Assembly: GCA_011109175.1 (NCBI GenBank)
Contig: RDEW01000007.1
Location: 1,130,295-1,194,294 of the forward strand
DNA length: 64,000 nucleotides
From: Dicyema japonicum
Lineage: Eukaryota; Animalia; Dicyemida
Direction of reading: 5' to 3'
This document shows, one piece after another, positions 1,722-52,284 of the stretch. Position 1 is the first letter of the stretch. Each line of letters opens with the position of its first letter. Below the pieces are notes generated by a model. It was given only the letters and a program-made list of their open reading frames with translations, did not search any database and was not told where the DNA came from. Position numbers and translations under genes: made by a program.

Positions 1722-4700
1722 TTGAACCGAAACCGAAACCAATTTATTCAACAGTAAATAAGGATTTAGTTTAAGGGATATTTAAACGTGTCCGCCTATG
1801 CGGCCTAGACACTTCCGATGCACCCCGTCTCCATTTAGTCTCTTTCTATCGTCGGATCCTATCGATCCTTTTCTCTACAATATATTTGACCGGTGTTAGA
1901 ATCTTGTCTTCTTCAGTACTGAGAACATCAAAAAGCTTCTTTTCCCAAAGCCAACTTTATTGCCGACCTTCTAATTTTTCCCATAAGTAACATAATTCTT
2001 TCTCTTTGGCAAGAGAAAAACCATGCTTCGCATCTATACAGCAGCTCTGGAAAAATGATTCTCATGAAGATGAACAAGAAGGTTTCCATGCTTACAAACA
2101 ACTTTCTTGTACATAAAAGTGCTTGAAGCGCCTTCTTCTGTCTAATGTCCTCCATGAAGGACCTTTCCCGTCGATTACTATCTCAAGGTAGCGCAGTGAA
2201 TTTATTTTTGGAATGTCAGAGGAGTAATGCTGCGTATGATGCCTCCTTAGGCGACTGACTCTTAAATAGGTGGACTTCTCAGTGGACAGTTTCATCCCTC
2301 TCTTGTGCACCAGTCCTGTACTTGTTCAATGAATGACTTGATTTTTTTCCGAGAGAGTTGATTTCCCGGATGTATCCGTGATCAGAATATCATCAGCGTA
2401 TATCAATAATCTGTTGTTCGTAACCGGTGGAATTGGGAAGTCTGACAAGAATATGTTTAACAGAAGTGGGCTCAAGACAGAACCCTGTGGAACTCTCCTC
2501 TTCAGTATGAAATCTTTTGACATATTTGCTCCAACACGTACTTGGGAAGTCCGTCCTGTTAGGAAGTCCTTTAACCACATGAAAAGTTTCTTTTGTATAT
2601 CAGCAGCTGCTAGCCTTGATAGGTGGGCTTCGTGCCACACCCTATCAAAAGCCTTGGACAGATCCAAACATACCAGGTTGACTAGTCTTTTTTAATTCCA
2701 GACCTCTCAATACAATTAATGCATCTTAGATAATCCTTGCATGATTTTCCAGGTCTAAAGCCACATTGTTTTGCGAGGAGGAAACCACTTTCTTCTATGT
2801 GGTCGTTAAGCCTTCTGAAGATAATTCGTTCGATAATCTTAGAGATCGAACAGATGAGGCTTATCGGCCTATAGCTGAGAGGGTCCCTCCTCGATTTTCC
2901 CGGTTTCAGTATCATTCTGACATAGGAAGATTTCCAGCGTTTTGGGACATGACCATGATGAATGCTTGCATTGAATAAATTCTTAGTATGGGAAATAGAT
3001 CCTCTGGGCTTCCTTGAACAATCTCATGCTTAGATGGTCATGCCAGGAGCGTTAGCCTTGCATTTCATGATTGCAGTCATGACTTCTCCGTAGTTATTTC
3101 ATTTCAGTATCTTTAGATCGTCCAAAGAGTAGGTTAAAATTTCACGTGAAGAATCTAACATCTCCCTCGGAATAGCTCCATCGGGTTGACCCCCTGAATG
3201 CGGTCCAGTTGTTCTTAAAATATCTGGGGCTTCTTCCATAGAACATAGTCCACCTTCTGGCTTGGTCAAGGAGATTTTTATGTCATTCCTTTTCTGGCCA
3301 GTTATTCTTTTGTAGAACTTCCAGAACGAGGGTCTTTGGTGTTTAGTTTGCTTGCCTCTACCCTCAAACATTGTTCTTGAGATAGTCTGTCTTCTTATCT
3401 TTCTTCAATTGTCCGGTCAATGCAATCCGGTCTATCCAGTCCACACATCTTCTGAGTTTGTCCTTAGGCGATTCCTTTCATTGATCAAAGATAATGTGGA
3501 ACGAAAGTCTGATACTCTTTCCATCATTGTACTTGAGGATCTCCTTTTGCGTAAAGCATTAAGTATGTCTCCATCATGATGGAGAGTTCATTGTCTATGA
3601 TGTCGATTTCACTTCGGGAATAATCTTTATCTTTCCAGTCTTTGAGGTTTCTTGATATGTACCTTCTGTAGTGCTCCCAGTTTACTCTTGTTAGGTCGTA
3701 ACCTATAAACACAGAGTCCATGGGGTCTGGAGCTAGGTTCAATAACATCTCCTGGGGTATATGGTCACTCCCGATGTCTCACATGATCATCGGATTCTCT
3801 ACACAAGTGTAGAGCAGTGGTGACACCAGGATCACCCCAAACATGTCTCCCCCGTAGTGCGAGTAATGATTCGGTTTTTCCGATGTCAAAATCTCAAAGC
3901 CAATATTATCACTCAATTTTCTTAATCTGATTCCATCCTCGTTAGTTCCGAGGCATCCACATTTAATGTTCTTGGCATTTAGATCACCCACTATTTCTAT
4001 AAAATTGTATCCCTGTAGCATTGCGGTGTTGATCTTTTTCACCTTGGTCTCGTTGACCACCAGGATGTCAATCTTGGTGGACGATAGTAGTAGTGCCAGA
4101 TAATAACGCCTCTTCTTTAGGATCGGACGTTCACTATCTTCAAGTTTCTTTTTAATTTTCTTATTGGTGGCCCGGGCTCTCCATGGCCAGGTCCACCATA
4201 CTGCGTAAATCCACCCCGAGTATGCCGCTTAGCTCCTTCAGTCTTGATATTATTTCCTTTAGTTCTTTTGTAATACTCCATGATAACTTTTCCTTCGGTA
4301 GGCCGACTCTCGAGGAAGAGGAACAGCTTCGTACTTGTTAGTTCTTGCGCCAATTACCCTTTTTTGGGCTGGCAGTTCCAATTTCTTGGTTATAATATCT
4401 GTCTGTTTTGGTTCCCTGTTGTCGATTTGGGAGTTTAACTTTCGTCTGGCTTCCATGAATACAGGGCATCCTTCGTATCTTTCGCCGTGTTTTGTTGACC
4501 CGCAGTTAACACATTTTCGTTCAAGAGTTGGATCCGCATTACACTTGGTGGTGTCGTGTTCTCCCGCGCACGAAAGCATTTTTTCTTTCCCATGCACTGG
4601 TATGCAAAGTGGCTGATTTGCTGACAGCTGTAGCAGATTGGTGGTCTTCTTCGCATCCATTCACAAAAAATCTTGTTCATCCCGATGTAGAAGCCACATC

Positions 4701-5920: not shown

Positions 5921-6007
5921 GAACCAGCGTAATTTTTAATTTCTAACAAAATATTGAAAATTAAATAAATTATTATTGAAAAGTAAAATTTATTGATTAT
6001 AATTAAA

Positions 6008-9000
6008 TTAATTGTGAATGCTGTATTCAACTTGAGTGCAATTGTAATAAGCATATATTTCCTTTGCAATCATCAATAATGTTGATTCTAATAATAAGAC
6101 CATTATTACCAATATTTGAAATATTACAACTTATTTCCTTCACTAATAGAATATGCTTACCAGTATTTATATTTTCTTGACAACAAATCACCCCCATTAT
6201 TAAGCAAACTAATTCGTTTAACTCGAAACCCTGTGGTTAACGGATAGTATACAAGAATTATGAAAACTCCCTCTTTTTCCGACAAATTACGAGAGTCAGT
6301 GATGTCGTAGAGTGCTCTGAGTATTTTGTTGACTTGTTTGTAATGGAATTTGCTAAAAAAATTGAAATAGGAGACTAAATTCTTTGTCATAATTTTGCAG
6401 AGTCCTCTCTTGTCCTTTTCTGGATTAAAAATCTTTGTAGCTTCTTGTACATTAATCTCCACCATAGACGAGAGTGAGTAAATGTTTTTCAAATAAAGTT
6501 CCGTGTAATTCTTCATCAGTTTTACAGGTAAATTGATTTGATTTTGGTTAACCAGACGACTTTTGAAATAGATGTGATTCCTTTGGAAGTCATCAAGGAT
6601 AACTTTATTATCCACTGTAATCTACAATACATGCAAATGATTACAGTCGTAGCATTCATAAAAATGAAAATTTTATTGACCACAGTGGCTGATGAAGAAG
6701 ATTCTGAAAATAAGTTAAATCTAACCATTTGTGATGAAATAATTAATTATAGTACCGCAATTGTCGAATCCTTTACTTCCAATGAAAACAGTGGCTATGT
6801 TGGTCAATTTAGACTTGTAGTACTCCTTATGTATTTACCATAACCAACCATTATCGTGAACACTCCCTTCGAAAAAGAAATCATAATTTCCTTCATTTTA
6901 ATTCTTTTTATATTTGCAGTTTTGTAAATCTCACTAATGTCGTTTATGCTCCTTGCTAGTTTGAAATAGTAGTCTGGGTTGTTTATCTCTCTCGTGAAGT
7001 CTTTTACTATTCTGTCAAGATCTGGAATGGGGAGACGAACCCATTCGAATTCTTCCAATTTATGCTTTATATCTTTAATCATTTTCGAGTCTCGATTTAT
7101 GTTCGGTGATGTCAAACAACAGTTTTTTATTTCTTTAGACAAGAGTATAAAACTAGATTCTTTGTAGGATCCCACGTCCTCGTTTCTGACTTTCCCATAA
7201 ACTTTTTCTTTTTCTTTAATCTCGTATTTTTTTATTTTTTCAAACAAATTCAACTTTTCCAGCAAAAAAATATAAACGTCGTTAAATTGTCTGTCTACAT
7301 AAAGAAGGAAGAGGGGACTGTTGATGAGGAAGTTCTTGACTTCCTTGTTTAGTTTGTTAATGATGACTATAATCTACAAATAAATTGATATACTACACTG
7401 TCAATGTCGCCTACAGCCAACAAGTAGGATGTTAATGAAACAAACTCACGTGCTTAAATTATGACTCATAAACAACCTATTTCGTACTTTTGGTATCTTT
7501 TCTTGATTAACATGAGATTAATTTTTCCGAATAAATCACCACCGTTCATAATTTTGGTGATAATAGTGATTCCCACAAGTTTCTGGTTGTGATAGGCCAA
7601 TATTGAGAAACCAAAAAAATCATTTAACATCAATTCGTTTAGGATTTGCTTATTTTCTTTTAAATTTTTTCTCAGCAGTTTCATGACGTCTTTATTGAAG
7701 AGTTTATAGTTGAATTGATAGAAAGATATTCCATTTTCCTTCTTCAAAAAGTATTTTGAATAATATTCTTTGGGATTCCTCGGTTTTAAACGATTTATGT
7801 TTTTTTCCGTCGACAAAAATCCATTTAAAACGATTTGACTCTCTGAATTTTCACTGATCCATTTGTGTGTAAGTGTCTCGTAGAACTCTCGGTTGAAATA
7901 AACAGGGAAAATCGTTGGGGAAAACTTTATGTGGACATGTTTACTTTTCTTGTTATCTGCAATTAGTTGTGAATTAAAAGAGTCTAGCAAATTGATATTA
8001 TTAGGATGGTAGTAGTGATATTTGTCAATCATATCCCTATCGATCCTAAAAACGTTTTGATTGTAGTAGTCTGGCGTTCTCTACCATTAATTTAGATCAT
8101 CAATACCAGTTGGTCTACTGGTGAATTCATTGCCCAATAGGGGACGTCAATCTATGATTAGTAACAACTGAAACCTTGGAAATATCAAATTCAGTAAGCT
8201 GATGAGAAAAGACCGTTGAATAGCTATTACACATTGTTTTTGGAAGACCCGTGAACTCCATGATGTGACTATCTGTATTGTTAACGAGGATTGTGGACTT
8301 TATTTAACACACAACTTACGTAAATGCAGTTGAATGTTGTCAACAAGTAGGTAATATTTTTAAGGAAAAAGTTAACGTGTTCCTTCATTTTAGTTTGATC
8401 GAATGTCGACTTGATTATAAACACTCTTCCTATATTCCATAATAGTCGTGGAGTTACTAAAATATAAGCTATTATCTCCATATCATCAAATTTATACTAA
8501 AATGGTAATTTCCAAACATACATAGACTTTAGTGTTGGAGATTCGGTTGTCATCATCACACACCAAAACGTCAAAGTAAACTTTATTGTTGTTTAATTTA
8601 TTAATAACATAATTCACTACACCAGTGTTGTCGATCAAATTGAGTATATTTTTGTTTACATCGCTTATTTTGATCACTTTCATGTCAATACTGAACAAAT
8701 TGATGTAATTTTGAATATCTTGGTTGTACGTCAAAAACTTGTACTGTTTGAAACATTTTTGGAAGATGTAGGAATTTAATATTTCAGAATTGAAACATCC
8801 TGACATATAAGTAGTAAAATTCATGTTATTAGGATCTCCAAATAACTCGGTTTTATCTTTATAGGCATAGCCTAAGAATTGATCCATCATTATGATCATT
8901 ATATAATTCTGTGTGTTATTAGCCTTGCAAATGGCATAACTAAGTAATAATTCCTTATCACAATTAACACACGTGGAGACTTTATTCTTTAATTCATCCA

Positions 9001-9025
9001 AATCTGCATAGTATTCATTATTCAT
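6008..9025 (-). CDS. Orphan ~921-aa protein with tandem GNAT-acetyltransferase-like modules, 11 micro-introns
   Basis: GT-AG introns at 8497-8521, 8298-8319, 8152-8174, 8081-8106, 7453-7476, 7374-7393, 6826-6848, 6704-6725, 6622-6644, 6231-6252 and 6088-6109 join six listed ORF fragments. The result is one open frame of 2766 nt (922 codons including stop). The GNAT call rests on motif resemblance only. Confidence 0.75.
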
Positions 9026-9619
9026 TTGGTTTAGGGTTTTCGGTAATATTTATATTTTTGTGTATTACATCACATTATTTATAATATAATTATATAACAT
9101 TCATGTTTCGTTGTTGCATAAGATTTCACAAACATTTTCTTTGTTCCATTGAGTTTACTCTCCGTTCCGATCTCTATCAGAGGGAAAACTAGGAGTCCAC
9201 TCCCACTCCTCTATTTTTCCATCTGAGCTGTGTGCGGTTGTCAAAAGCTGCTGCTTGTGCAATTTCGAGTTGGGATTATCTACCTTGCCTCTTTAACCAC
9301 TCTGATCTATAGTCCTTAGTGGAGGGGTGTCTTTAATGTTCGGCTCCACAGTCTAAACTGGAGGAAATTCAAACTCCACTACCTCAGATTTGTGGGCGAC
9401 ATTGCCCTTTCTGCCTTTCTTAGTATGCTTCATGTCTTTTCCTGTTGTCGGAGATTTTATCCAACACTTCGAAAAGTCTTTCTCAAAGTCCTAACAGCAT
9501 GGGAAGGGTTGGGCTATTTCTCGAAGGTCTTGGAATCACTTTGCGCTCTCTGCAGCTCAAGAAAAACCTTAACCAACAGCTCCTGGATTGATTTCGCTAG
9601 GTATGCATGAAACATAGTA

Positions 9620-13162: not shown

Positions 13163-14976
13163 TTAATGAATAGTAATAATATCAGTCAACATATCAGACT
13201 GTTGAATAGCCCCAATATCCTTCAAACCGTCAATAAACTTATAGCAGTTATCCCTCAATTCCTCATACTTCCCAGAATCAATCAAAATCATCAAATTACA
13301 GCAATAATCAGCAAAGGGACAAATCACATCATTACCCAATAACATTCTCTTCATTGTACATAACAACTACCAATAACTATATCCCTACCTCCCAACACAT
13401 CTCCAGCACTTCTTTATTCACTTCCACTCGCTTCAGCACCACCAAGATACAGTCATTCACCAACGCCCATGACCACCGTTCCATCACACACGTGGACACT
13501 ATCTGAGAAAAACAGCCCAGACTCTCAAAAAGTCGAATAGCTCTCCAAAGTGAGTCATAAAAGTAAACAGCCTCACGACTATGACGTTTCTGGAGGACTC
13601 TATCACATTAATCACATAAATACTCCTTCGAATACAAAGGAATTGATAGTTTAAGAGACTCATCCACCTTTGCCTTTATAATTCCGAACAACTTTTGAGC
13701 CTCCTTAGAATCGGGAACTGGAATTGGGTACATTGTAAACAAATGTTTCACAATTTCTACAAAACGAAGAGTTGTCTCATAGCACGTTGGATCCCAGGCC
13801 TCAGAAACGATGTCTACCGTTATCATTGACAAATACCAGCAAGTCTTGAGACCACAGCCTTCTCCACAACTAGAGGGACCACGTGACAGTCTCTCTGGTC
13901 AAATTCATCGGATGTATTCAACGAGTACTTAATCAGAGTTTTAAACCATCCAAAGTCCTCAATCTTACGGTAGACATCACTAAGGGGATTCCAGTTAATA
14001 AGTTCCAAGCGGACAAACGGGGTCACCATTTTGCACAAAGATAGTCCCCCATACGACTTATCGTAGCTGTCACGACAAAAAGTCTTCCATTCCGAGAATT
14101 TTCGGCAAATTTCATTCACATTGCAATACTCCTCAGCAGTATCCTCAAACAGGGATCTGGCTTCAACCACAAACTGTTCATTCATCTTCTTCTCCTTGAA
14201 GTTTATCAAAGACTGGGTCAGTACGTGTTCAATCCCCAACATCTGACGTTTATAGGATGAGGTACCTTCTCGTTGATGCAATCCGCCAAAGTCAAGATGT
14301 AGTCCTGAATAGACTGATAAAACTGGTAGGAAGACTCAAGGTTAGGTCTCTTTTGTTTTAACCTCTCAAGTCGAGCAGATGTCTCCGTCATTCGAGTTTG
14401 GATCCCTTCACGGTCATCTGTCGAAGTCTTGGTATTGATTTCCTTTAATTTCTCTTTCATGCTATCCAAAATCTCATCCCCTGTTCCAACCCACGTGGGA
14501 ATTATGACCTGTTGGTTATCCACTTTTTCTTCCGTTTGTTTAACGACGACAGAATTAATTCCTTTACGGATTTGTTGGTTTTCCCAGTCGTCTTCACTCT
14601 CTTCTAATTCCACATTGTCTTCAGAGGAGTCGTAATTTCCAAGTTTTTCGGCCTCCCTGGTGATCAATCTGCTTTTGCGGGCGTCGTAAATTTCCATGGA
14701 ATCGGGAATCTCCCTGGACTGTTGAGCAGGCAATCTAAATTTATGCTTTTGTTTATTATCCGGGTTTTTGATATCGAGGGAGACTCTGCTTTTTGGTTGT
14801 TCCTTCTTGGTCATGGAATTTGGAGTAATCGAGTTTGAGACGTCATCCATGAAGCTAAGAGAAGAGATTCCATGAGACTTATTTAGGGAGTTAGTAGTTT
14901 TGATGTAAATTATGTCATCATCTGAATCTGATAATGTCTTTTTACGGATATTTCGTTTGGTTGACATACGTTCCAC
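13163..14976 (-). CDS. PAXBP1: PAXBP1/GCFC2-like (GC-rich sequence DNA-binding factor, NTR2-type splicing factor)
   Basis: Motifs YQSIQDYILTLADCINEK, LFEDTAEEYCNVNEICRKFSEWK, DSYDKSYGGLSLCKMVTPFVRLELINWNPL and IVSEAWDP. Exons are joined by 23-nt introns. Confidence 0.85.
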
Positions 14977-15083
14977 AAGACAACAAAGATCAATTTTTTT
15001 AATTTCAAATAATTAAATTATAAATATTATTATTGAATATTAATGTTATATAATCTAATATTAATGAGATTGAAAAAAGATTT

Positions 15084-20449: not shown

Positions 20450-23095
20450 TCCAAATTTGACCAAGCACGCCAGACGTCTCAACGAAGATCGAATGGAGGG
20501 TGAGCAGATCCCAATGCCATGATACTTCTTCCTTTCGGATTTTCAGCAAATCTCGCTGTGGAATCGCGTTTGAAAAAGTATCCATGTACTTTGAATCCAA
20601 GAGGACATCTCACCATTGCTATTTATATTATTATGTACGCGATGCCAAGATCATGACAAAGCATATGCAACACGAAAAGTTAACAATCTAATTAACGTCC
20701 CCATCTTTTTCGATCCGCTGCCATGTTCCGTAGCATATCTAGATCATCCCCATCTTTAAGGCACTTTCCAATTTTCCTGAGATCTTCATCTAGGATTACC
20801 GGAAGTGTTGTCCTCGGCCGGCCGCGGAAACGAGAAGCTTCTAAGACAAAATACTCCTCCATTGCTATGTTGGCAGTGGTCCCCATATAGTATGTGTCCA
20901 AAGAGCCTCCATCTTGAATCAGTGATATCACATAATATTGGCTCAGTTCCTGTTCTCTTGTATAAGATTTCGGACGGCATTTTGAAAAAGCTTCGGGAAG
21001 AAAGGAGTGTTCGGATATGATTTCTGTGAAAAGAATTCAACTTTTCGAGTTCCTGAGTTCCTGTACATGCCCATGTACCTGCATTATATAATAGAATTGG
21101 TCTCACTAGAGCATTGTATAGTCTCATTAGAGTTTTAGGGTCAAACTTTTTGTTCAGAAACCAGGTCTTCTTCATTTTGTTGAAAGCGACATTAGTTAGT
21201 GTCTTCTTTCGTGTTATATCTTCGGTTTCACCAAAAAGAGATCCTAGTTTTTTTATCTACGCCAGTTCTCTCGGTCCTTTCTTCACATCTTTTTAGCTCC
21301 GTTTGGTTTTGTTTTGTTACTTTTAATGACCTCAGCCATTTTATCAGGCATTTTCTCCAAAAGTGCAATTAACTCTTATATGTTATTCGAAATAAAGTCC
21401 ACGTCATCTGCATATGTTATTATGCTCTTTCCTTCTCTGATATGAGGCTTCAAGTCTCGTAGAACTGTTTCCAGATAAATAATGAACAAAATCGGGGATA
21501 AAGGATCTCTTTGAGGAGAACCAAATGTCGTTTCAAATTTCCTCGATAAAGCTTTAGCAGTCCTAAACATCAAACTGGTGTCGGTCAAGGATGTCCTGAC
21601 CATCCTCATCGTTGAGCTCTCCGAAAAATGGTTCAGTATTTTCAGCAGCTTGATCCTGTTGATGGAATCAAATGCCTTTGACACATCAATCTCCAGAATG
21701 GTTGTCGTTATTTTAAATTTTTGAACAGTCGCACTTCTCCATTTGTGGCTTCATATAACATCTGACGTTGATCTCCCTTTGCGGAAGCCACTTTGATAAG
21801 CAAACAGGTACAAGTCTAGGCGTCCCTCGATTTTTTTAAGCGTAATATTGGCTAGTATCTTTCGTAGTTTGTTGGTTAAGACCACTGATCTTAGGTTCTC
21901 AACTTTCCCCGATTTTTTGTTTGGCTTCTGTACTGGTATCAGTAGTCCTTCTCCAAGTGACAAAGTGGCTCCTCTATACGTTTCGTTTAGAATCCAAACA
22001 ATTATCATGTATAACTTTTGAGTTCCATATTCGAAAAATTCACCATTTAAACCATCTGGGCCGGGACTCTTATTGTCCTTCAGTTTTAACTAGCTGTCAT
22101 CACTTCTTCCAAAGTTATTTCTTTGTCTAATTTTTTTTGATCCGTGTTAATTATGAGTTTTTTGCTATTTTTATACAAATTGTGCTTCAAAATAATCCGC
22201 TATAAGTTCTGCAACTTCTTGTTGGTTAGCAATATGTTTTTCTTCTTCATCTCGTAAAGTCAGTGTTTTCCTTGGTAGTTTTCTGATTTGGCCGACAACT
22301 TCATAAAACTTCGCATTGTCTTTAAGGCCTTCGATTTTCTCTATTTTTGTTATTGTTTCGTTCTTTAATATCCGACGTGCAGCTTTTCTTATTTTCTTTT
22401 AATAACTGTTATTTCATTTTGTAGCCGCTGTTTCGTATTTTTGTCATCTGTATTTAGACATTGTATCTATATCGCCTTTTGTTGATTAGAAAAGAGTTTC
22501 AAAGCGGTTATTTTTTCAGTTGGTGTATTAGTCACGTAGTCCTCTTTTAGATATATATCCGCAGCAATCATGATATTCTGTTTGACCAAGGTCTACGTAA
22601 TTTGCAGTGACAAATCTATTGATATTTCTTTCAATCCCTCATCCAAGTATTTTCTAAATTCTTCTCCCTCGATAGTATTGTTCTTTAGATGGTCTATAAT
22701 TTATCCTTTCCCCCGCAGTTCCTTGTGTCCATTGCACTATCTTTTCATCCCTTGCAAACCCATAAGTTTCTTTAAGGACATTATGGCAATAGCCATCTTG
22801 TGATCGCTGTCAATTATAGACCCTCCATAAGCACGGGCATCAGTGACAATACTGCGGTCTTTTTGTTTGAAAATAATGTAGTTTATTTAATTGTAGATTT
22901 TCGCAATGCTTCCGTCAGACTTCGTTCTATTGCCTGACCAAGTTGTCCTGTGTCTTGCTGAGTACATAAAGGTTATTTCCGTGTTACAAAGGAGTAGGTT
23001 ATTTGCATGACAAAAGCTAGATAGCAAGGTTCCTGCAATGTTCCTTTTTCCCTTTCCATGTCTTCCAATGAATGCTTCTTCTATGATTGCGAGTA
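20450..23095 (-). mobile_element. RTE-clade LINE, 5'-truncated and degenerate
   Basis: Endonuclease segment IGRHGKGKRN...RHRTTWSG. RT motifs QSGFRKGRSTSDVI, SKAFDSINR, GSPQRDPLSPILFIIYL and YADD. C-terminus LVRPILLYNAGTW...RWRLFGHIL...RFRGRPRTTLP. Confidence 0.9.
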
Positions 23096-25360
23096 GTTTC
23101 AATGAGAAAGATAGTGAAATCTGCATTGCCCATGAAGGACTTGCATACGTCATCGTTGGTAATTGTTCATAAATCGTGGCAAGGCCACTAGTTTGGTCTC
23201 TAATTGTTTTTGAGAGCAATTTTAAAATTCTCATTTTCTTCAGAGCAGAAGTTACTTTGTTTTTAACATGCCGGATAATGGTGAGTTCCTGATCAAAGGT
23301 TATTCCCAGAATCTTCGGTGTTTTGTTAATAGGAATAGCTTCGTTCTTCATAAAGATTTTTGGTTCGATGCTGTCTTTTGTAGGTGGCAAACAGTGTGAC
23401 AGAAGATTTTGTTGCTGATGTGTCGAGTTTCCGCTTCGACAGACATAGTTCCAGCTTGTCAAGTATTTGTTGTGCTGACTGAGTCGCTTGTTGAATGCTT
23501 CTGTCCTTGGAGGCAAGAATGATATCCTCGGCATAGAATAAGATTAGAGAGTTTTCATTACAGGATTTTAACATGTCGTTTATGTAGAGATTGAAGAGTT
23601 GGGGTAATATTGGGAAGCCTTGAGAGACTCCATTTGTGAATTAGTGAGATCTTGATTTGATGTTGTTGCAGAGTACTTCTGATTGTCTTTCATTTAAGAG
23701 GCTTACAAGCCTAACTTTTAAGGTCGGATCGATGTTGGTTTCAAATATTTTCTTTGTAAGGAGTTTCCTAGGGATTGAATCAAACGCTATTGTGATGTCC
23801 ACGTATATAAGTACTGTCATCTGATGAGGTTTAGGGGAGTTAAATCCTCCCGCAATTAATTGTGTGAGGATTGTGAGGTGTGTTGTGGTCGAATGGTTAC
23901 CCCGGAATCAGTGTTTGTCGAGGTATTGATATTGAGTCTTGTATTTTTTCTAAAACAAGCCTTCAAGGATCCTTGAGACCGGAACATCCTGACTAGTAAA
24001 TAGGATCCAGTCATCGGAGCGCTTCGGTTCAATCTTTTTCAGGAATACTTGGTGTTCTTTTAAAAACTTCTTGTAGGAGATAGACGTGTAATATTTTATC
24101 AGAGTGTCTGGTTTTTATGTAGACTTCGACTTTTCTCTCTGGGGAGGATCTTTTGATATTCTTGATCCACTTCCACACTCTCTGCATTGGGGGGTTTTTG
24201 CAGAGAGCCTTCGATAGTCTCGTCCATCTATTTGCATTTTCTGCCTTTATGTTGTTGTCGATCTCTCTGTTCAATTTTCGTATTTTCCTGATGTTCTCTT
24301 CTGTTGGCGATTTTACCACCTTTATATTATTTCGTTCTCTGATCAGATGTTTCGTCGTTGTGTTGAAACGTTTTGATGACGTAGGTTGTCTCCCCATAGG
24401 AATGTACTTCTTTTTCGCATCGTTTATAATGGAGTTAACCATTTCACTAATTGTTCGACGGAGGGAAAAGTGGGAAATTTAATAGTCCAATACAATTATC
24501 GACGTATTCCTTGAATCCTCTCCAATTCGCAAGGCTGTAGTTAGTTATCGTTGGGCATTGTCCTTTATCCGTGACCTTGTTTTGAACCTCTAAAAATATT
24601 GGATTGTGGTCACTCCTGGTGTCATACTTCACTGACCAGTCAATAAGATAAGCCAAGGACGGTGATGACAATGAGATGTCGATAGAAGAAGGTTTATCGT
24701 TACGTCGAGTAGGTGTTCTTGTATGAGATGCAGGATTCGTTGAGTATACATAGGCTGTGTAGGTCCTCAATTATCATCTTCCCTTCTTTTGTCGTAGGTT
24801 TGTCCTGTCAGCCACAGTGGGTGCTTCGCATTAAAGTCACCACAGATAATCACATTCTTCAGTGATGCGAGAGGAGTGAGTCTGGGAGCGTTGGACGAAC
24901 AGAAACTCAACGGTAGGAGATATGCGTTGACAATTATATTTGATAGTCTTGGAATCGTACTTTGGTAACCAAAAGTTCGAGATTTCCATACCCTTTAAGC
25001 ATAGTGTAAGCACTGTTGGTTATGTCCTCAAAACGGAATGCCGTTGCGGATAACTGTGAGAAGACCCACCAAGTTTGCCAATAATGTCACGGCGAATTAC
25101 TGTGAATCCCGGAAAATACTGGTGTTGAATTCTTTGGAGAAAGTTTAGACTCTTGAATTAGCAAACAGATCGATGTGATTTTCTTTCACAAATGTCCGAA
25201 AGTTCGAGTATCTTGTTCTTGACTCCATTTATGTTATTCTGGCTGGTCCAGAGTTTGCCTCAACGTCTCGCAGCGGCGCAGGCCTTCCTTATTGGTCCAC
25301 CCGTGAAGATAGGGGAAAGTGTGGTTCTTTTTCCACGTCGTCGGCGAGCCACATGACATT
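23095..25360 (-). mobile_element. Ingi/I-group LINE (5' end, endonuclease, RT; 3' end replaced)
   Basis: Endonuclease QNNINGVKNKILEL, GDFNAKHPLW, SSIDISLSS and SDHNPI. RT FYAEDII and TPKILGITFD. A possible degenerate 2A-like motif lies at the 5' end. Confidence 0.85.
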
Positions 25361-38949: not shown

Positions 38950-41490
38950 ATGGGGCGTCATTTGTTTTTCGAATCATTGGAAGATTTAATTTTTAAAGGG
39001 ACATCAAACTCAGTAGATTTGATTAAATAAACCACAGGAAGAATTGGAGTCTAAAATTCTTATCCAGCAGAACAGTAAGCTAGTTCAAGCTCTCAAACTT
39101 TCAAAACAGCAAGTAAATGAGCTGACTAGGAAAATCAGCGCCTTTGAGGAGAGAAGGGACGCTGATGACGCCCTCCTAGCCCTTATCAACAGGAATTGGA
39201 ATCAACTGAACTTGGAGTTGAAGAATATGATTTACAACCACCTTGGTGAGGTTCCAATGGAGGTAGAAAACGGTTGTAAGTCTAATTCTCAATTCTAGAA
39301 AGGCTAACTGAGTCGCTACAAGACTTTCAGTTGAAACTGTCAGGAATGGAAACTGGGAAATTGGACACTGATCTAAATGAGAGGATCGCTCAGTCTAAAA
39401 TGTTGACTAATCACATTATTTCAGCATTTTCCAAGTTTTTTTCATTGTTTTACATTAGAATTAAGGAGAACAACGAAAAACTGATCTCATTCCTTAAGGA
39501 TGTGAAGATTGACCCAGAATATCCTAAGTCTGAGAACCCAACTGACCTTGTGGCAGAGTTAACCGCCGTAAATTGCAGCCTAAATGACAGGCTCTGCACT
39601 TTGGAGAGCACAAACAGTGATCTGATGTACAAACTAAACGAAATGACTGACAAGTGTGTGAGTGTGACCAACTCTATTGCTGTAATGAAGAGAAAAATCG
39701 ATGAATTGAACTACAATCTGACCCAAGAGAGAATATACTCCGTAAAACTAGAATTCAACCTCCAACAGGCGCAGGAGGAGGCAGAAAGGGTGTCCACACA
39801 TAAGGAGGAGAAAAAAGAGGACGGGGAGATTCAAAAGAGCAGTTCTGATAATGAAAATATCGATATCCTCCAGCAGGAACTTAATCAAGTTAAATCACAG
39901 TCCTCAGCTCGACTTATCGAGTTGGAGCAGATGATGAAGGAAAACGAACGGTTGTCCCTCGAATGTGGGCAGAAGGAAATAAAAAATGAGACCGCTGACA
40001 CGTCGATTGAGGTGGCGAAACTAAAAAGACAGTTCGCCAACGCAATAAACGATATCAATCGACTCAAAACTCGCTTGGAAGAGGTCAACGAGGAAAAATT
40101 TATGCTGAAATTCAGTCAAAACCAACTCTCTGAGGACATGAAGGTGATGTGTGGCCTAATTTGGCAGACTCAGGGGAATATCCTTGAGAAGGGGGCCAAG
40201 AAAGAGATTGAACGGTTGGACCGACTGCTTCTGCTTAAGGAGAGAGATTACGAAAGTTTGCGACTGGAGAATGCTCAGTTGGTAATAATCAGCGAGAATA
40301 CGAGTTTATAGTGTTGTTTATGAAAGATGAGATCCATAGGGAGATGAGACATCTTATAAACAGTCTTCAGTCTTATAACAAACAACTAAAGGACGAAAAT
40401 GTCAAATATCTCACGAAAATTAACGAAACTATAACTCAGAATCCAGTCACATTGGAAAGTCACACCTCTATTGACAAGTTGACTGATTTGGAGGTGGTCT
40501 TACTGCTGATTTGTAGTTGGACGAACTTGCATTGCAGTCTGGTCAGTCAGAGCTAACAGTAGACTGAAGGCAGCTTATAGAACTGAGGAGGAGTTGAATA
40601 GGCGCATAAACGAGATGAGAGTCTATATTGAGGATCAGAAACGGAAATTACAATGGCACAAACAACAGGAGGAGACTCTGATGCAGGAAATGGACGTTAC
40701 TGGGGAGGCGTTGGAAGATATGCAGGAAAGGAACAGAAAACTGCTCGATCAACTCTCTACGAAGGAACAGGCGTATATCACGCTGCTCTCGGAGGTGGTT
40801 TGGGTGATGACTGGCAGAGAATAAAGGATAAGCATGTGATTGAGCAAATGAATGAGGAGAAGAGGTCATATAAGGAGCACGAGGCCGTGATGCAGCAAGA
40901 GATTGAGAATATTGGTAGAATAAACTCCAATCTGAAAGAGAGGGAGCACTCACTGAACAAAATAATAAGTAATTTGGAGAACGAGGAGAATTAAGGAGGA
41001 GAAGATAGAGAATGTGAACAGACGGTACAACCAGATCCTACAAAAGTGCGATGAGTTTAAAATAATATCCGACTCGCATTAAAACCAGCTTAAGGAAGCA
41101 CAACAATTGCTCGCGGAGAAGGGTAGTACGATAAGAAACGATGCCTTCCAAATTAGAAGACTTGAGGTGGTGATTTGTGAAACTTGTAGGAGGATGTCGG
41201 TAATTTGAGAGGACAGCTGGATAGGATCTCTAAGCTACGAGGAATGGATACCAATGACACGACATTAATGGACGAAATAAAGGAACTCAAGGTTGTTATG
41301 GTTATTATGGTAGGACCGATTGTTGTGTCCGTGTTGTCACGTGCATAAGAAGAACGCAGTGCTAACAAACTGTTTCCACGTGTTCTGTTTGGAATGTCTT
41401 ACCCATTTGTATCACATTAGAAAGAGAAAGTGTCCAAAGTGCAATTCAAGTTTTGATATTAATGAATTTAAACGTCTTTGGTTTGACTGA
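38950..41490 (+). CDS. BRE1: E3 ubiquitin ligase BRE1 (RNF20/RNF40)
   Basis: N-terminal ERRDADDALLALINRNWNQL, long coiled coils and RMHYQAMQE-like EEQETLMQEMDVTGEALEDMQERNRKLLDQL. C-terminal RING CPCCHVHKKNAVLTNCFHVFCLECLTHLYHIRKRKCPKC. Introns are 24-30 nt. Confidence 0.95.
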
Positions 41491-41959: not shown

Positions 41960-42835
41960 ACCCTAGTTATGAAAACCATATTAGACAATGTAAAAGACGA
42001 AGCTCGTCGCGAATGGTGTGAAACTGGTTTGGATATACCGAACGATCCTTCGAGGCAACGTGACTGGGATGATATCTACTCCAAGAATATCTTCGACGTG
42101 CTAAAGTCTGAGGCCAACCAGCATCGTCTTGCATGCCTCGTGTCCGCCGCCAACCATGGGAGCGGAACGTGGCTGGTTCCACTCCCGTGTTCCTCCCTGG
42201 GGACCCTTTTGGACAATGACTGTATTCGGATTGGGATCGCACAACGCCTGGTAGTTTATATTTGCGTCGAACACCAATGTCGTTGTGGAGGGATCATCGA
42301 TGCCAAAGGACTGCATCCGCTCTCGTGCAAAAGGAGTGCAAGCAGGCACCCCGCCATGCTGCTATGAACAACATTGTCATGCGAGCTCTTGAAGCGGCAG
42401 GCTTCCCGGAAGTACTGGAGCCTGTGGGATTGGACCGCGGAGATGGGAAAAGACCGGATGGGTTAACTATCTTTCCGTTTACCGATGGAAAATCGCTCGT
42501 ATGGGACTGCACTGTTGTGGATTTTTTCTTGAACTCGATGATACTTAGCTCGGCGCAGTCTGATGGATCGGCAACCGATCTGGCCGAGAAAATCAATATT
42601 AAAAAATATGGCGAAATTGGAGACCGCTACCATTTTGCACCGGTAGCAATCGAGACGTCTGGTGCGGCCGGAAGTATTACATCCTCTTTCCTAAAGGAAA
42701 TCGGGGGGAAATTGGCCCACCGCAAGAAAGACGTGCTGGAAGCGGTCTGGCTGAGGCAACGGAATGGTATCGCAGTTGTCCGCGGAAGCGCTTACTCAGT
42801 GATGTCAGCAGCCGCTCTCCCCAATAGTTAATAAA
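41960..42835 (+). mobile_element. CRE-like non-LTR element, 3' part (CCHC + RLE)
   Basis: GTWLVPLPCSSLGTLLDNDCIRIG, CRCGGIIDAKGLHPLSC, GKRPDGLT...WDCTV and FAPVAIETSG...AVWLRQRNGIAVVRG. Confidence 0.9.
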
Positions 42836-45604: not shown

Positions 45605-47900
45605 TTACATTTTATTGAAATTTAAATTTACTGTCCTGATACCGGTGACAAGGTCTCCTTCAATTCTTGGGCTAATGTTCTTCAGGCTATTGTAACTTTA
45701 ACTCACAAAATTGGTCGAGCTGAAATTATGTCATGTCTATCTCATTACAGACTTCTTCCAAATGGAGTACCCCAAGGTTCTGTTTATCACCCACCTTATT
45801 CAACTTACACCTAAGCGACATTCAATCAATTCCAAGACACTTCTACTATTGTATGCGGATGACATGATTGTTGCCTCTAAAAATATAGACGTTAAAAAAG
45901 CAACGAAAAATGTTCAGAACCACTTGAACACTCTTGAAGAGTGGCTTGGAGCAAACCACATATCCCCTCTCCATCGAAATCCACCGTCACTGTATTCACG
46001 TTCAACCGCCGCCAACTAAATTTTCAACCAATTTTAACAATTCGTGGACAACCACTCACCGTTACGAAACATCCCAAAATACTTGGAGTTATTTATGACT
46101 AACTACTAACTTTCTCTAAACATGTGGAGGAACAATGTACAAAGGCCTCTCACAAGATCAACATACTTAAAGATGTGTCAGGTCATTCCTTTGGCGAAAG
46201 CAAAGAAGCCCTAGCCATCATATATTAACAATTCATTCGAACAACTATTACCTATGCAAGCCCTTGCTGTCAACCTCTGCCTCTCTTACTTCTATTGACA
46301 AACTACAAAAAGTAGAAAACATCGCGCTCAGGATAATTACTGGATGTCTCAGATCAACTCCTGTCGATCATCTACATTGGGAGTCAAAGATCCTTCCAAT
46401 TGGAGACCATCTGGAAATGAGAGCCCTGCAGTTCCTCTTCCAAGCCTACAGTCTAGAACATCCCTGCCATACCCTATGCAAGCCGCAAAACAAAAGGAAA
46501 ATTATTATGACAACCAGTGACCTGTCTCGGATGTTATCATCCATTCCTTCCATCTCCAATGACAGGAGTCGTCTTAAACAGATACACGATTTTGTTTCTA
46601 CGAAGAGCATCCGAAGACTCGGAGACAATAAAATATTACAGCGACCCCCTCCTCCAATAGACCAATCAGAATCCTCTCTTTCAAGGGACGTGCGAGTAAA
46701 CCTGGCTCGTCTACGATGTGGGCACCACCCATATCTACCAGCTTATGATGTACTCTGCCTCTTTTGCAACCTCCACGTGCTGACAACAAATCACCTATTT
46801 CAATGTCATGAATTGGCACAACGTTTTTCCACAATGCCGGAACTGATCGATCTATGGGAGCGACCAACATCTGCTGCGTACTACTTAATTGCTGCTGGCC
46901 TCCTACAAGTTAATGAGGCTGGGGTTACTTAACTAACTAACTTTAACTCACATTCGAAAACAGTCCTCACTAAAGGACTGCAGAAGTTGAATTTTATACG
47001 CGCGCTTGTTCGGAGGACTCTTTTAAATTTGGATGCTTATGTTGGAAAACTTTACTAGCAAACCATAAGGATCTCCTTTATCTCCTGCTCTGTTTAACTT
47101 TTTGGATAATCAGCTCGTGGAGAATGCAGAGAAGTCGACTTTTTTACCTATGACAAAAGATTATGAAGGAAGACAGTCACCTTGAAGTTAAATAAGGGCG
47201 ATATCTCTTTCAAAAGAGGTCAAAGGATCTTGAAGATGACACTTGACATGCATCTTTTTCTACAAAATATTCTTGTGAAGAATGTGGAAGATTGGTACTT
47301 ACCCGGTCTTGATGAACGTATACAGACAGCTCATAGAGCCATATTTCTCATATGCATGCGCCTCGTAAGGAATGGTCATATCTTGGACAAATATGAGGAA
47401 GTTGAGGAAAAAACTCACGTCTCTCCAAATTCTGATAAAAGAGGAGCTTGTGAATTCAGTAAAGCTGTGGGTACTCTGAAGGACCGCGTCAAAAACCTTT
47501 CGATCCTGTTGAGGTCTACTGGGATCACTTAATAGTATGGTTTAACTCCCTCTATCTTGGTGTTCCCATTTTCGGGATTAGATATTAATAATTCGTAAGA
47601 GATGACATGTGATCCACCTCAGGAGACACCCAATGCCTGGCATTCAAAAAGAATTCGCTTTTCTATACTCCGTGGAAGGGTTTCCAAAATGGCGAATATG
47701 GATGGACGTAACATATGCGTCTCACTCTGACCATGGGAACTGGGGAAAGCGAAAGATCAATGCATCTCCAAGAGGTGATTGTAAAAAATGTAATATCATT
47801 TGACTGCCGTCACTATGGAATTGGTATTGGAATACATCTATCAATTATGAATCGGCTACTCAGAGTTACTGACCGGATTTCTGTCATCCGAATTGCTTAC
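45605..47900 (-). CDS. Unknown micro-intron gene (or extended SETDB1 5' exons) with a LINE in one intron
   Basis: The spliced frame ...TEQEIKEILMHPNLKESSEQARSFSEDCFRI|LKNISPRIEGDLVTGIRT... runs across the LINE-containing intron. Upstream exons are not resolved. Confidence 0.45.
45708..46937 (+). mobile_element. Ingi-like LINE, 5'-truncated, with perfect TSD
   Basis: RT motifs GVPQGS, YADDM and PKILGV. Post-RT LRIITGCLRSTPVDHL and RVNLARLRCGHHP. It has a (TAAC)n tail and a 15-bp TSD TAACTTTAACTCACA at 45693-45707 and 46938-46952. Confidence 0.93.
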
Positions 47901-49789: not shown

Positions 49790-52284
49790 CATGAATGCAG
49801 CAAGCAATTTATGAAAAACATTTTAAGGACTTTAGATTACTTGTATGCTTTGCTTGATTATCCGGGGGATGATGAAATAATATATATAATCGAAAAAACA
49901 TCAGACGCGTTAATTGAGAACATTTCAGATATTTACGATACCTTAAAATCAGAGTGACTTTATACTTATAACTTTAGAGACTTTGAGGGATTCGATTATG
50001 AAATAAACAACAAATTGGCTGTACTCTATGAATGGATTGATGAGATTGTTGTCTTTAATAGAAACAACATTTCCACTAATTTAGTAAAGTCTCACATAAC
50101 ACGACTAAAGAACTCATTAGAGGTATTTCCTGTTATTAACAAAGTCCTTTTATATTAAAATGACTACCAACAAAGAGTTACCCGGTAGACATAGAAAATC
50201 CCTTTCAGAGACTCAGTCTAAAATTCTTAAAGATGTTCAAAATGAGTTTCCCAACACGAATGAATCAATTTGTTTTAAAAAACCTGTGGCTTTATTCAAC
50301 AAAAAGGAAATTTCAAACTCTCAGTATGACAAACTTAATGAGATTCAAAATTGGTGTCCCAGGACGAATGAACCAGCCATGAATGAAATTTCAAACTCCC
50401 AACATGAAAGCCATCAAAAAACTACTATGCCCGACACACAAAAAATTTTAGATTCCCACTACGACATGCTTAGAAATATTCAAAATGAGAAAAGTTTGTA
50501 TGTATTTCCGGATCTACCGAACATACGTGGAATCTCAGATAATCAATATGCCATTCTTAAAAAGATTCAAAGAGACGTTGATGTCGAGTATTTTGAGATT
50601 GAGGACGATTTGACCATTGATGATTCTGCTTGTAGTGAAATAATATATATTGTAGACTCTAGTGTAAAAAATAATTCGTCACACAACGACTTGTCCCTTC
50701 ACAACTCTAACGAGACATATGCGTGTGTGTATCGTAATTTGATTGGAAAAAATGATTGCTTTCAAAGTGGATTTAGCTGTATATGATAGTATTATTAGAC
50801 AGATGGGGACATTTATGCCAGTAACACTAAACATTACGTTAACGTGGATGAAATGAATCCTGCTAAGTTACTTATGGGTCACTACATTGCCCCCAATACA
50901 GAACTGGTGAAATACGAATACGACAGAAAGTACATCACCAAGGAAATAATTGAGGAAATAGTCAACCTTAACATTAGCATAGTAATTGGGATATTATATT
51001 CTCAGTGTGAAATAAAAACAGCCCCTATCGATGCCATTATTGGTTTGGCTGTCATTTCAGATCGTCTTTCTAAGGATTTTCAATGTATTTTTGTGAACTC
51101 TTATCGCAACTTTATCAGTTCGTTTGAATTAATCAAAAAACTCCAGATTTTATATTTCATATCACTGGATATTAGTAAGGAAATGTTATACGATGACGTT
51201 CCACATTGTATAATCAGCTTCTTGATAACCATATTTGACTCATTGGTGTAAGCTTTTTCTTAAATTTTAGAATTTCTGAGATTGACTTGGATTTGGTCAA
51301 GCTTGTCTCCAATTTCACACACACATTAATATTCTTTGGTCAATTTTGGGAGGTTAGGTTAATCAGAAATGAGTACAAAATAAAAATATTAAAGTTATAT
51401 TTTTCCAAATCAGATATTATGTTGCGAGAATTCGAAAGTTTTAGCAAAATTGTTAGATCAACCTCTTCTCTTAAAGAAATTGTTAAAAAATTCAGTAATT
51501 GGTTATTTTCCTAATAATTTTTAGTGATAACATTCTGGATCTTCACTCGTTCGAAATCGCCAAACAGTTGACTCTCAGAGACTGGAATCTGTTCGAATCT
51601 ATAACCCCCACAGATGTGTATGATTGGATCTATCGGAGGGCTCACATTACTTCATATTTCCCCAAAGTAGCCTACTTTCTGGATTCTTTCGACTCGACGT
51701 CCTTATGGTTGAGTCTATAATTATAGAAAGGTGTCAACAACAAATTTTGAACGAAAAAAACGACAAATCACGTATAAAAGTAATAAAGAAACTTGTAAAG
51801 ACCGCAAATGTAGTTTGCGTTGTGATATTAGTATTTACTTAAATTCAAGAATATTCATTCCTACTTGGCCATTTCATATTCACTGGATTCTCAAGACTTC
51901 TTCATGTTGAACCTTCCTTCCAATATAAAAACAAGATTGAGTGATATCATCGACTCTGCTAATTGGAAGTTGTTTAAGGAGTACTCACCAATGATAGAAT
52001 TCTGTGACTCTCATTCGGCAATCCCTCACTTTGTATGCAAGTTGTAACAGTTTTAGTGGGGTGACTCTCAACTCAATACAAACCTTAAAGGAGAGGTGAA
52101 TCAGAATATCTGTGAATTTGAAAACTGTCGTAAACAACTGGAAATATTCAAACAACTCAAATTAATGCAAGAAAGGTATGTTTGTGTTAATTTTAATAGA
52201 AAATATAATTTCGAATGGAACGATAAAGCATACCAAGTTCTCAAGGATATTAACCCCACAACATTTTCTAATTTTAATTCCTAG
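49790..52284 (+). CDS. RAPGEF1: Ras/Rap GEF (REM + CDC25), C3G/RAPGEF1-like
   Basis: REM FVNSYRNFISSFELIKKLQ (compare C3G YRTFISPEELIKKLQ). CDC25 DLHSFEIAKQLTLRDWNLFESI and RIKVIKKLVKTA. Start approximate. Confidence 0.8.

Follow-up and report, generated by a model that had tools for sequence, protein, structure and literature searches.

A window of 64,000 nucleotides (nt) of DNA from Dicyema japonicum, a parasite of octopuses, which is the whole stretch that was analyzed here (positions 1,130,295 to 1,194,294 of scaffold C345), contains a cluster of long open frames between positions 6008 and 9025, all of them on the minus strand. According to the original prediction, which was made from the letters of this stretch, six of these frames fuse through 11 GT-AG introns into a single gene for a protein with several tandem modules of the GNAT fold (the fold of acyl-coenzyme A [acyl-CoA] N-acyltransferases). 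The fusion of the frames into one long gene was confirmed by a splice search, by the controls run with it, and by a paralogue in the same genome, and the protein likely contains a fourfold internal repeat. The best explanation of the protein, which we hold with middling confidence, is a lineage-specific quadruple GNAT-like protein with diverged modules, of which at most one is predicted to be active.

Gene structure and the paralogue

The gene model was obtained by a shortest-path splice search in which the permitted introns were GT..AG segments of 19 to 28 nt only and the start was the ATG at 9025. The path from this ATG to the TAA at 6010-6008 requires exactly 11 introns, with lengths in 5' to 3' order of 25, 22, 23, 26, 24, 23, 23, 22, 23, 22, and 22 nt (range, 22 to 26 nt). 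The spliced coding sequence of 2,763 nt specifies 920 amino acids (aa) and a stop codon, which corrects by one codon the size of 921 aa and 922 codons first given and narrows the intron range of 20 to 26 nt that went with it; the protein is ~108 kDa, with a calculated pI of 8.9. All the peptide strings quoted in the original prediction were found in the exon translations. Under identical rules, no path could be traced through any of 40 pieces of 3 kb taken at random from the window or through any of 20 shuffles, and the antisense strand could not be traversed either. Ten of the 11 introns have lengths that are not multiples of 3, and the remaining one, of 24 nt, holds an in-frame stop. One caveat is that looser intron-length limits cause the path to overrun the true stop, so that a stop-free path alone is weak evidence, and it is the controls and the paralogue that carry the case. 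A ciliate genetic code was rejected, since the standard code together with tiny introns accounts for the frame.

This evidence shows the locus to be a genuine nuclear gene of Dicyema japonicum with 12 exons. Among animals, introns of less than 30 bp are known from dicyemids and myxozoans only (PMC13644364), and the Dicyema japonicum assembly (67.5 Mb in 377 scaffolds, with a GC content of 36.7% and 5,012 genes) has a mean intron length of 38 bp (PMC6736024). The gene had been described as hidden, and this is apt for the raw sequence; we make no wider claim, as the 5,012 gene models of the published assembly are RNA guided.

The paralogue, found by a search of the kind that the original prediction had recommended, lies on the same scaffold and strand, ~441 kb away, and is the sole other genomic match for every long exon. 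All exons of at least 25 aa are matched there, with order and strand conserved, and the small exons 2, 3, 8, 11, and 12 were recovered at this locus by exon-by-exon tblastn, with E values from 3e-19 to 5e-5. After homology-guided splicing, the paralogue encodes a collinear protein of 902 aa that is 39.5% identical to the window protein across 877 columns, a divergence at which synonymous sites are saturated. Nine of the 11 intron positions and phases are common to the two genes; the paralogue is without intron 5 but has two private introns. Genome-wide profile searches with four exon alignments returned these two genes only. A third paralogue on scaffold C101 (E value of 0.007) was treated as noise, since the profile search did not reproduce it, and an origin as a transposon or repeat was rejected, the genome holding just two copies that are 39% identical. 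The comparisons show what appears to be a two-gene family, with no relatives outside this genome found in the searches run.

Because of the paralogue comparison, we consider the 12-exon model secure, exon 4 aside. Exon 4 (8107..8151; residues 269-283, 15 aa), which lies between intron 3 (8174-8152; phase 0, 23 nt) on its 5' side and intron 4 (8106-8081; 26 nt) on its 3' side, is the least certain of the twelve. Its match in the paralogue extends over 6 aa only (I-D-I-P-F-W against I-D-V-P-Y-W), following the common phase-0 intron, and the counterpart (positions 3696-3772 of the paralogue locus, L010) runs into a TAA with no usable GT donor before that stop. In our model of the paralogue this counterpart is treated as skipped, inside a 77-nt intron; either it is indeed skipped in this way, or it uses a non-GT donor, or it is a damaged copy.

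Internal repeats and shared introns

The protein likely has a fourfold internal repeat, with modules at approximately residues 120-283, 377-545, 611-790, and 791-920 and linkers of ~90 and ~65 aa between modules. The repeat was tested with hhalign by comparing the two-sequence paralogue alignment with itself. Residues ~377-475, in module 2, match residues 792-885, in module 4, with a score of 34 and a probability of 66-69% (z of 9.6), compared to 11.5 +/- 2.2 and a maximum of 21 for column shuffles. The same register was also recovered exon against exon, with a score that is lower because exon 10 holds only half of the region. To judge from these alignments, modules 2 and 4 are clearly homologous; they correspond, respectively, to the segment that the original prediction described as carrying motifs A and B and to the last segment that it listed. 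Of the other module pairs, 3 and 4 gave a z of 4.7, 1 and 2 a z of 3.6, and 1 and 3 a z of 3.2, with the rest at noise level. The best pairing of module 2 is with module 4, and a weak alignment links module 1 to module 3, which makes the duplication of a double-GNAT unit possible. The first segment that had been listed as a module, residues 41-55, falls outside every module that is supported here.

The exons can be followed through these modules along the minus strand. Exon 1 (8522..9025; residues 1-168), which begins with the start codon at 9025-9023, contains the N-terminal region, with four cysteines (C19, C22, C33, and C91) that the paralogue also keeps, and the beginning of module 1. Intron 1 (8521-8497; phase 0, 25 nt) leads to exon 2 (8320..8496; residues 169-227), which holds beta3-beta4 and a helix of module 1 and is 53% identical to the paralogue, and intron 2 (8319-8298; phase 0, 22 nt) leads to exon 3 (8175..8297; residues 228-268), at the end of module 1. 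Exon 5 (7477..8080; residues 284-484 and 1 nt) comprises a linker and then the N-terminal two thirds of module 2. Beyond intron 5 (7476-7453; phase 1, 24 nt), which is absent in the paralogue, exon 6 (7397..7452; residues 485-503) holds the putative alpha3 of this module, and after intron 6 (7396-7374; phase 0, 23 nt), exon 7 (6849..7373; residues 504-678) holds its putative beta5-alpha4-beta6, a linker, and the beginning of module 3; the 3' end of exon 7 encodes the recurring motif G-V-F-x-I-[LM]. Module 3 continues after intron 7 (6848-6826; phase 0, 23 nt) with the beta3-turn-beta4 of exon 8 (6726..6825; residues 679-711 and 1 nt), after intron 8 (6725-6704; phase 1, 22 nt) with exon 9 (6645..6703; residues 712-731), and after intron 9 (6644-6622; phase 0, 23 nt) with exon 10 (6253..6621; residues 732-854), where module 3 is completed and module 4 contributes its N-terminal half. 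Intron 10 (6252-6231; phase 0, 22 nt) separates this half from the beta3-turn-beta4 of module 4 in exon 11 (6110..6230; residues 855-894 and 1 nt), and intron 11 (6109-6088; phase 1, 22 nt) is followed by exon 12 (6008..6087; residues 895-920 and the TAA), where module 4 ends. This last module stops after strand 5, before the latter half that a complete GNAT fold would have.

The introns recur at three places in the modules. A phase-0 intron lies between beta2 and beta3 in modules 1, 3, and 4 (introns 1, 7, and 10, respectively), a phase-1 intron lies after beta4 in modules 2, 3, and 4 (intron 5, in the window gene only, and introns 8 and 11), and a further phase-0 intron lies just before beta5 in modules 1, 2, and 3 (introns 2, 6, and 9). 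When these positions were mapped onto an eight-sequence module alignment, same-phase introns coincided across modules in 5-9 pairs, compared to 0.2-0.6 expected (P <= 1e-4 in a permutation test). Modules 3 and 4 were also aligned by hhalign, with no intron information used, and both of the introns that they have in common fall at aligned residues there. Two points weigh against a fully fourfold reading: the third intron set served as the reference for cutting the segments of the permutation test, which leaves the first two sets as the free tests, and modules 1 and 3 are linked to the others just by z values of 3-5 and by this intron periodicity. In the history that we propose, an ancestral alpha/beta module with three tiny introns, of phases 0, 1, and 0, would have been multiplied to four, with intron losses afterwards. 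The repeat and its introns go part of the way toward showing that the protein arose, as they suggest, by internal duplication of a single intron-bearing module.

Fold and cofactor loop of the modules

Library searches, ESM Atlas searches, and folding runs were carried out exon by exon, and the joined protein was used for the paralogue alignment, the internal repeats, and the intron mapping. No family profile or sequence search identifies the protein, as the original prediction, which could match it to no familiar animal gene, had anticipated. Pfam searches with all exons of both paralogues, at E values up to 10, gave scattered noise only and no GNAT family, and an NCBIfam scan of the exons gave no family match. 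Three word-indexed searches, run with exon 5 and the alignments of exons 1 and 7 against 5.8 billion proteins, gave zero matches, as did an exhaustive HMMER search of 1.84 billion representative proteins at E <= 0.001 with the exon 5 profile only. The largest other open frames of the window, at 39286-40308(+), 14221-15012(-), 46171-46929(+), 50121-50783(+), 22890-23543(-), and 42220-42828(+), likewise had no Pfam match at an E value of 0.001, which indicates that family-less sequence is common in this genome and is by itself weak evidence of novelty.

Proper testing for a GNAT fold was limited to module 2 (residues ~377-545), the first two thirds of which lie in exon 5. This part of the module has the element order beta1-alpha1-alpha2-beta2-beta3-beta4 and carries GNAT-like signals. 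In the ESM Atlas feature search with exon 5, the ten best language-model clusters were all GNAT (scores of 0.92-0.93; recognition value, 3044). Run against PDB sequences at E values up to 10, the exon 5 profile gave six matches, all of them to GNAT proteins, namely human NAA30 (E value of 0.26) and AAC(2')-Ia, and aligned from beta1 on; the same searches with exons 1, 7, and 10 gave unrelated proteins only. AlphaFold models of the fused exon 5-6 of the paralogue (pLDDT of 41) and of exon 5 of the window gene (pLDDT of 38) are poor but show the order beta1-alpha1-alpha2-beta2-beta3-beta4(-alpha3); they are exon-level pieces, as introns split every module, and the second half of the fold lies outside them. 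With both of these low-pLDDT models, GNAT proteins made up most or all of the top Foldseek matches, weakly, at E values of 0.04-0.3, and the four leading VIA-align matches of the exon 5 model, also weak, were HAT1 and AAC(2'). The single-domain GNATs NAA30, NAA40/NatD, HAT1, and AAC(2')-Ia are in this way the best, if weak, matches of module 2 in the PDB profile, Foldseek, and VIA-align searches, from beta1 to alpha3 and with the elements in the same order. The signals are weak and agree with one another, and all of them come from module 2. Our proposal is that the module is a strongly diverged GNAT fold, of which module 2 would be the most complete copy.

The pyrophosphate loop of GNAT proteins, with the consensus Gln/Arg-x-x-Gly-x-Gly/Ala, lies between beta4 and alpha3 (PMC4964394). 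Intact acetyl-CoA-binding loops, which the original prediction had proposed as a check on its own reading, are present in none of the four modules, and this weighs against an enzyme. In a register derived from the module alignment and not from a confident structure, the loop residues of module 2 are Q-K-Y-E-I-A in the window gene and, in the paralogue, R-V-M-E-S-V, with position 1 kept and Glu for the central Gly in both. The loop was also sought in the module alignment for modules 1, 3, and 4, and none was seen. The Gly-rich stretch of exon 8, which had been put forward as a GNAT segment, was rejected as a CoA loop because its aligned counterpart in modules 2 and 4 is the turn between beta3 and beta4. 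In the mechanism that we consider, module 2 would retain the Gln/Arg and the Ala-type position of the loop, with Glu for the central Gly; by analogy with double-GNAT enzymes, whose second domain shapes the substrate site for the active one, it would at most bind acyl-CoA and act on a substrate held between modules, and the other modules would be structural.

The loop bears most directly on the explanation in which the four diverged GNAT-like modules form a wholly non-catalytic pseudo-acetyltransferase, with old clefts that bind peptides, lipids, or partner proteins, much as has been suggested for the pseudo-histone acetyltransferase domain of O-GlcNAcase, a reading that we consider possible but somewhat unlikely. 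The consensus is found in no module, the Glu of module 2 is common to both copies, and module 4 is truncated. Moreover, a canonical loop of the R-x-x-G-x-A type is kept in three of the four ordinary GNATs that were read from the same genome, so that its loss characterizes this family and is no general property of the genome; this tells against an active protein. On the other side, the pyrophosphate is bound by backbone amides and not by side chains, and some GNATs with atypical P-loops are known to be active (PMC4964394). The Gln/Arg at position 1, which the inactive Eis domain lacks (PMC4964394), is kept in module 2 of both copies, and the block that surrounds this module is the part of the protein best conserved between the paralogues. 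Our best guess, by analogy, is that at most module 2 binds acyl-CoA, with a fully non-catalytic binding protein as a nearly equal rival. A true quadruple GNAT of dicyemid origin, present in two copies and still active, with a non-canonical CoA loop that contains Glu, toward a substrate particular to the parasite, seems to us unlikely, and the acyltransferase scaffold of the original prediction is a conjecture.

A different explanation is that the gene encodes a lineage-specific repeat protein of generic alpha/beta units that do not derive from a GNAT, in which case the GNAT signals would be false positives from a common strand-helix pattern. Several results lean this way and weigh against a GNAT identity. 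All of the GNAT signals fall below the significance level of the tool that gave them, no GNAT profile matched, and folds of the LolA, START-like, and ABBA prenyltransferase kinds stand in the VIA-align list as well, with Z values that are almost equal. The Atlas tool returns ten concordant matches for a third of shuffled proteins too, and it found no match for exon 10. A six-frame scan of the genome with PF00583 found five ordinary GNAT genes, the present locus not among them, and hhalign comparisons of the modules with the NAA10-like, NAA30-like, and ESCO-like exons of the genome gave no signal (z of -2.3 to 1.4). Against the generic explanation, GNAT was ranked first by four methods of different kinds, namely language-model features, the PDB sequence profile, Foldseek 3Di, and rigid structural alignment; the matches are in the expected register, from beta1 to alpha3, and control exons treated equally yielded unrelated noise. 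We accordingly rate generic alpha/beta units as quite improbable. The GNAT reading retains the greater weight: we consider it likely that module 2 has a GNAT fold, and modules 2 and 4, at the least, probably have a GNAT-like one. Of the array of three to five GNAT modules in the original prediction, what held was the repetition, with four modules counted, and the first rank of GNAT for module 2 in four independent, individually weak tests.

We consider it highly improbable that the gene was acquired horizontally, as the original prediction had also suggested, in this case from a bacterial GNAT, with introns gained afterwards, or that it is a much diverged counterpart, by orthology, of a conserved animal protein such as HAT1, an NAA subunit, or ESCO. 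The support for this is a weak fold-level likeness to HAT1, NAA30, NAA40, and ESCO structures only, and against it stand the zero matches of the exon 5 profile and the three word searches, the host-like GC content (31-36%) and CACGTG content, the nine introns common to paralogues just 39% identical, and the ordinary NAA-like and ESCO-like GNAT genes elsewhere in the genome. Horizontal transfer is unsupported.

Other features of the locus and wider comparison

Two candidate signals flank the gene on the minus strand, both read directly from the sequence. A candidate core promoter element, the TATA-like word TATAAATA at 9047..9054, lies ~29 nt 5' of the ATG, and its counterpart in the paralogue, TATATAAA at L010:4661-4668, lies at a similar distance from the ATG (~27-32 nt in both genes), which implies very short 5' leaders. 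A candidate polyadenylation signal, AATAAA, is at 5989..5994, 14 nt 3' of the stop codon. The paralogue has in addition a two-codon upstream open frame, ATG-GAG-TAA, and ~600 bp upstream of its start there is a 193-aa open frame on the minus strand (L010:5249-5827) that resembles, by eye, a fragment of a long interspersed nuclear element (LINE) reverse transcriptase. The CACGTG palindrome occurs at 27 sites in the window, with two copies in the gene and three in the paralogue; the copy at 7447-7452 falls right at the 5' end of exon 6.

Secretion of the protein is improbable, since its N terminus is not hydrophobic. A transmembrane segment at residues 850-870 (Kyte-Doolittle value of 2.1) is unlikely, as the segment contains two Glu and aligns to strands beta2-beta3, and the value in the paralogue is 1.6. 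Among the NAA10-like sequences of the genome, an identical 79-aa exon is present on two different scaffolds, at G000:C13:1360557-1360901 and G000:C345:802504-802848, with flanking open frames that are ~95% alike; these loci may represent a recent segmental duplication or uncollapsed haplotypes.

The closest known parallels are the double-GNAT enzymes, such as N-myristoyltransferase, NAT16/HisAT, the mycothiol synthase MshD, Eis, and GLYAT, which likewise have more than one GNAT-fold unit per chain by duplication (PMC12219266, PMC4964394). Such doubled folds are rare, and as a rule activity resides in one of the domains, with a structural role for the other (PMC12219266, PMC4964394); the two folds are packed as one continuous sheet with swapped C-terminal strands (PMC12219266). 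As these enzymes typically retain one active unit, so in the present protein module 2 is best preserved and the rest appear degenerate. The likeness is one of module repetition at the sequence level, and the differences are considerable: the present protein has four modules and not two, with the long linkers noted above, no sequence similarity to these enzymes is detectable, no module has a canonical P-loop, and the last module is truncated. A brief literature search found no quadruple-GNAT arrangement. Another comparison is O-GlcNAcase, an animal protein of ~900 aa with a pseudo-histone acetyltransferase domain, that is, a GNAT-like domain regarded as non-catalytic (10.1101/2025.03.10.642372). 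However, O-GlcNAcase has a single GNAT-like domain and an N-terminal GH84 hydrolase that is detectable by Pfam, and no such hydrolase was found here.

If the modules are indeed GNAT folds, their fourfold array would be unusual for a fold of which even double versions are rare (PMC12219266), and the protein would offer a natural case for the decay of duplicated enzyme domains into structural ones. Its practical value is limited for now. The repeating pattern of 22- to 26-nt introns implies that the ultra-short introns are older than the internal duplication, and the pattern provides a small dated sample of the gain and loss of tiny introns. The dicyemid genome is among the most reduced of animals (PMC6736024), and since it nevertheless keeps two intact copies of a large lineage-specific protein, this protein likely does something that the parasite needs.

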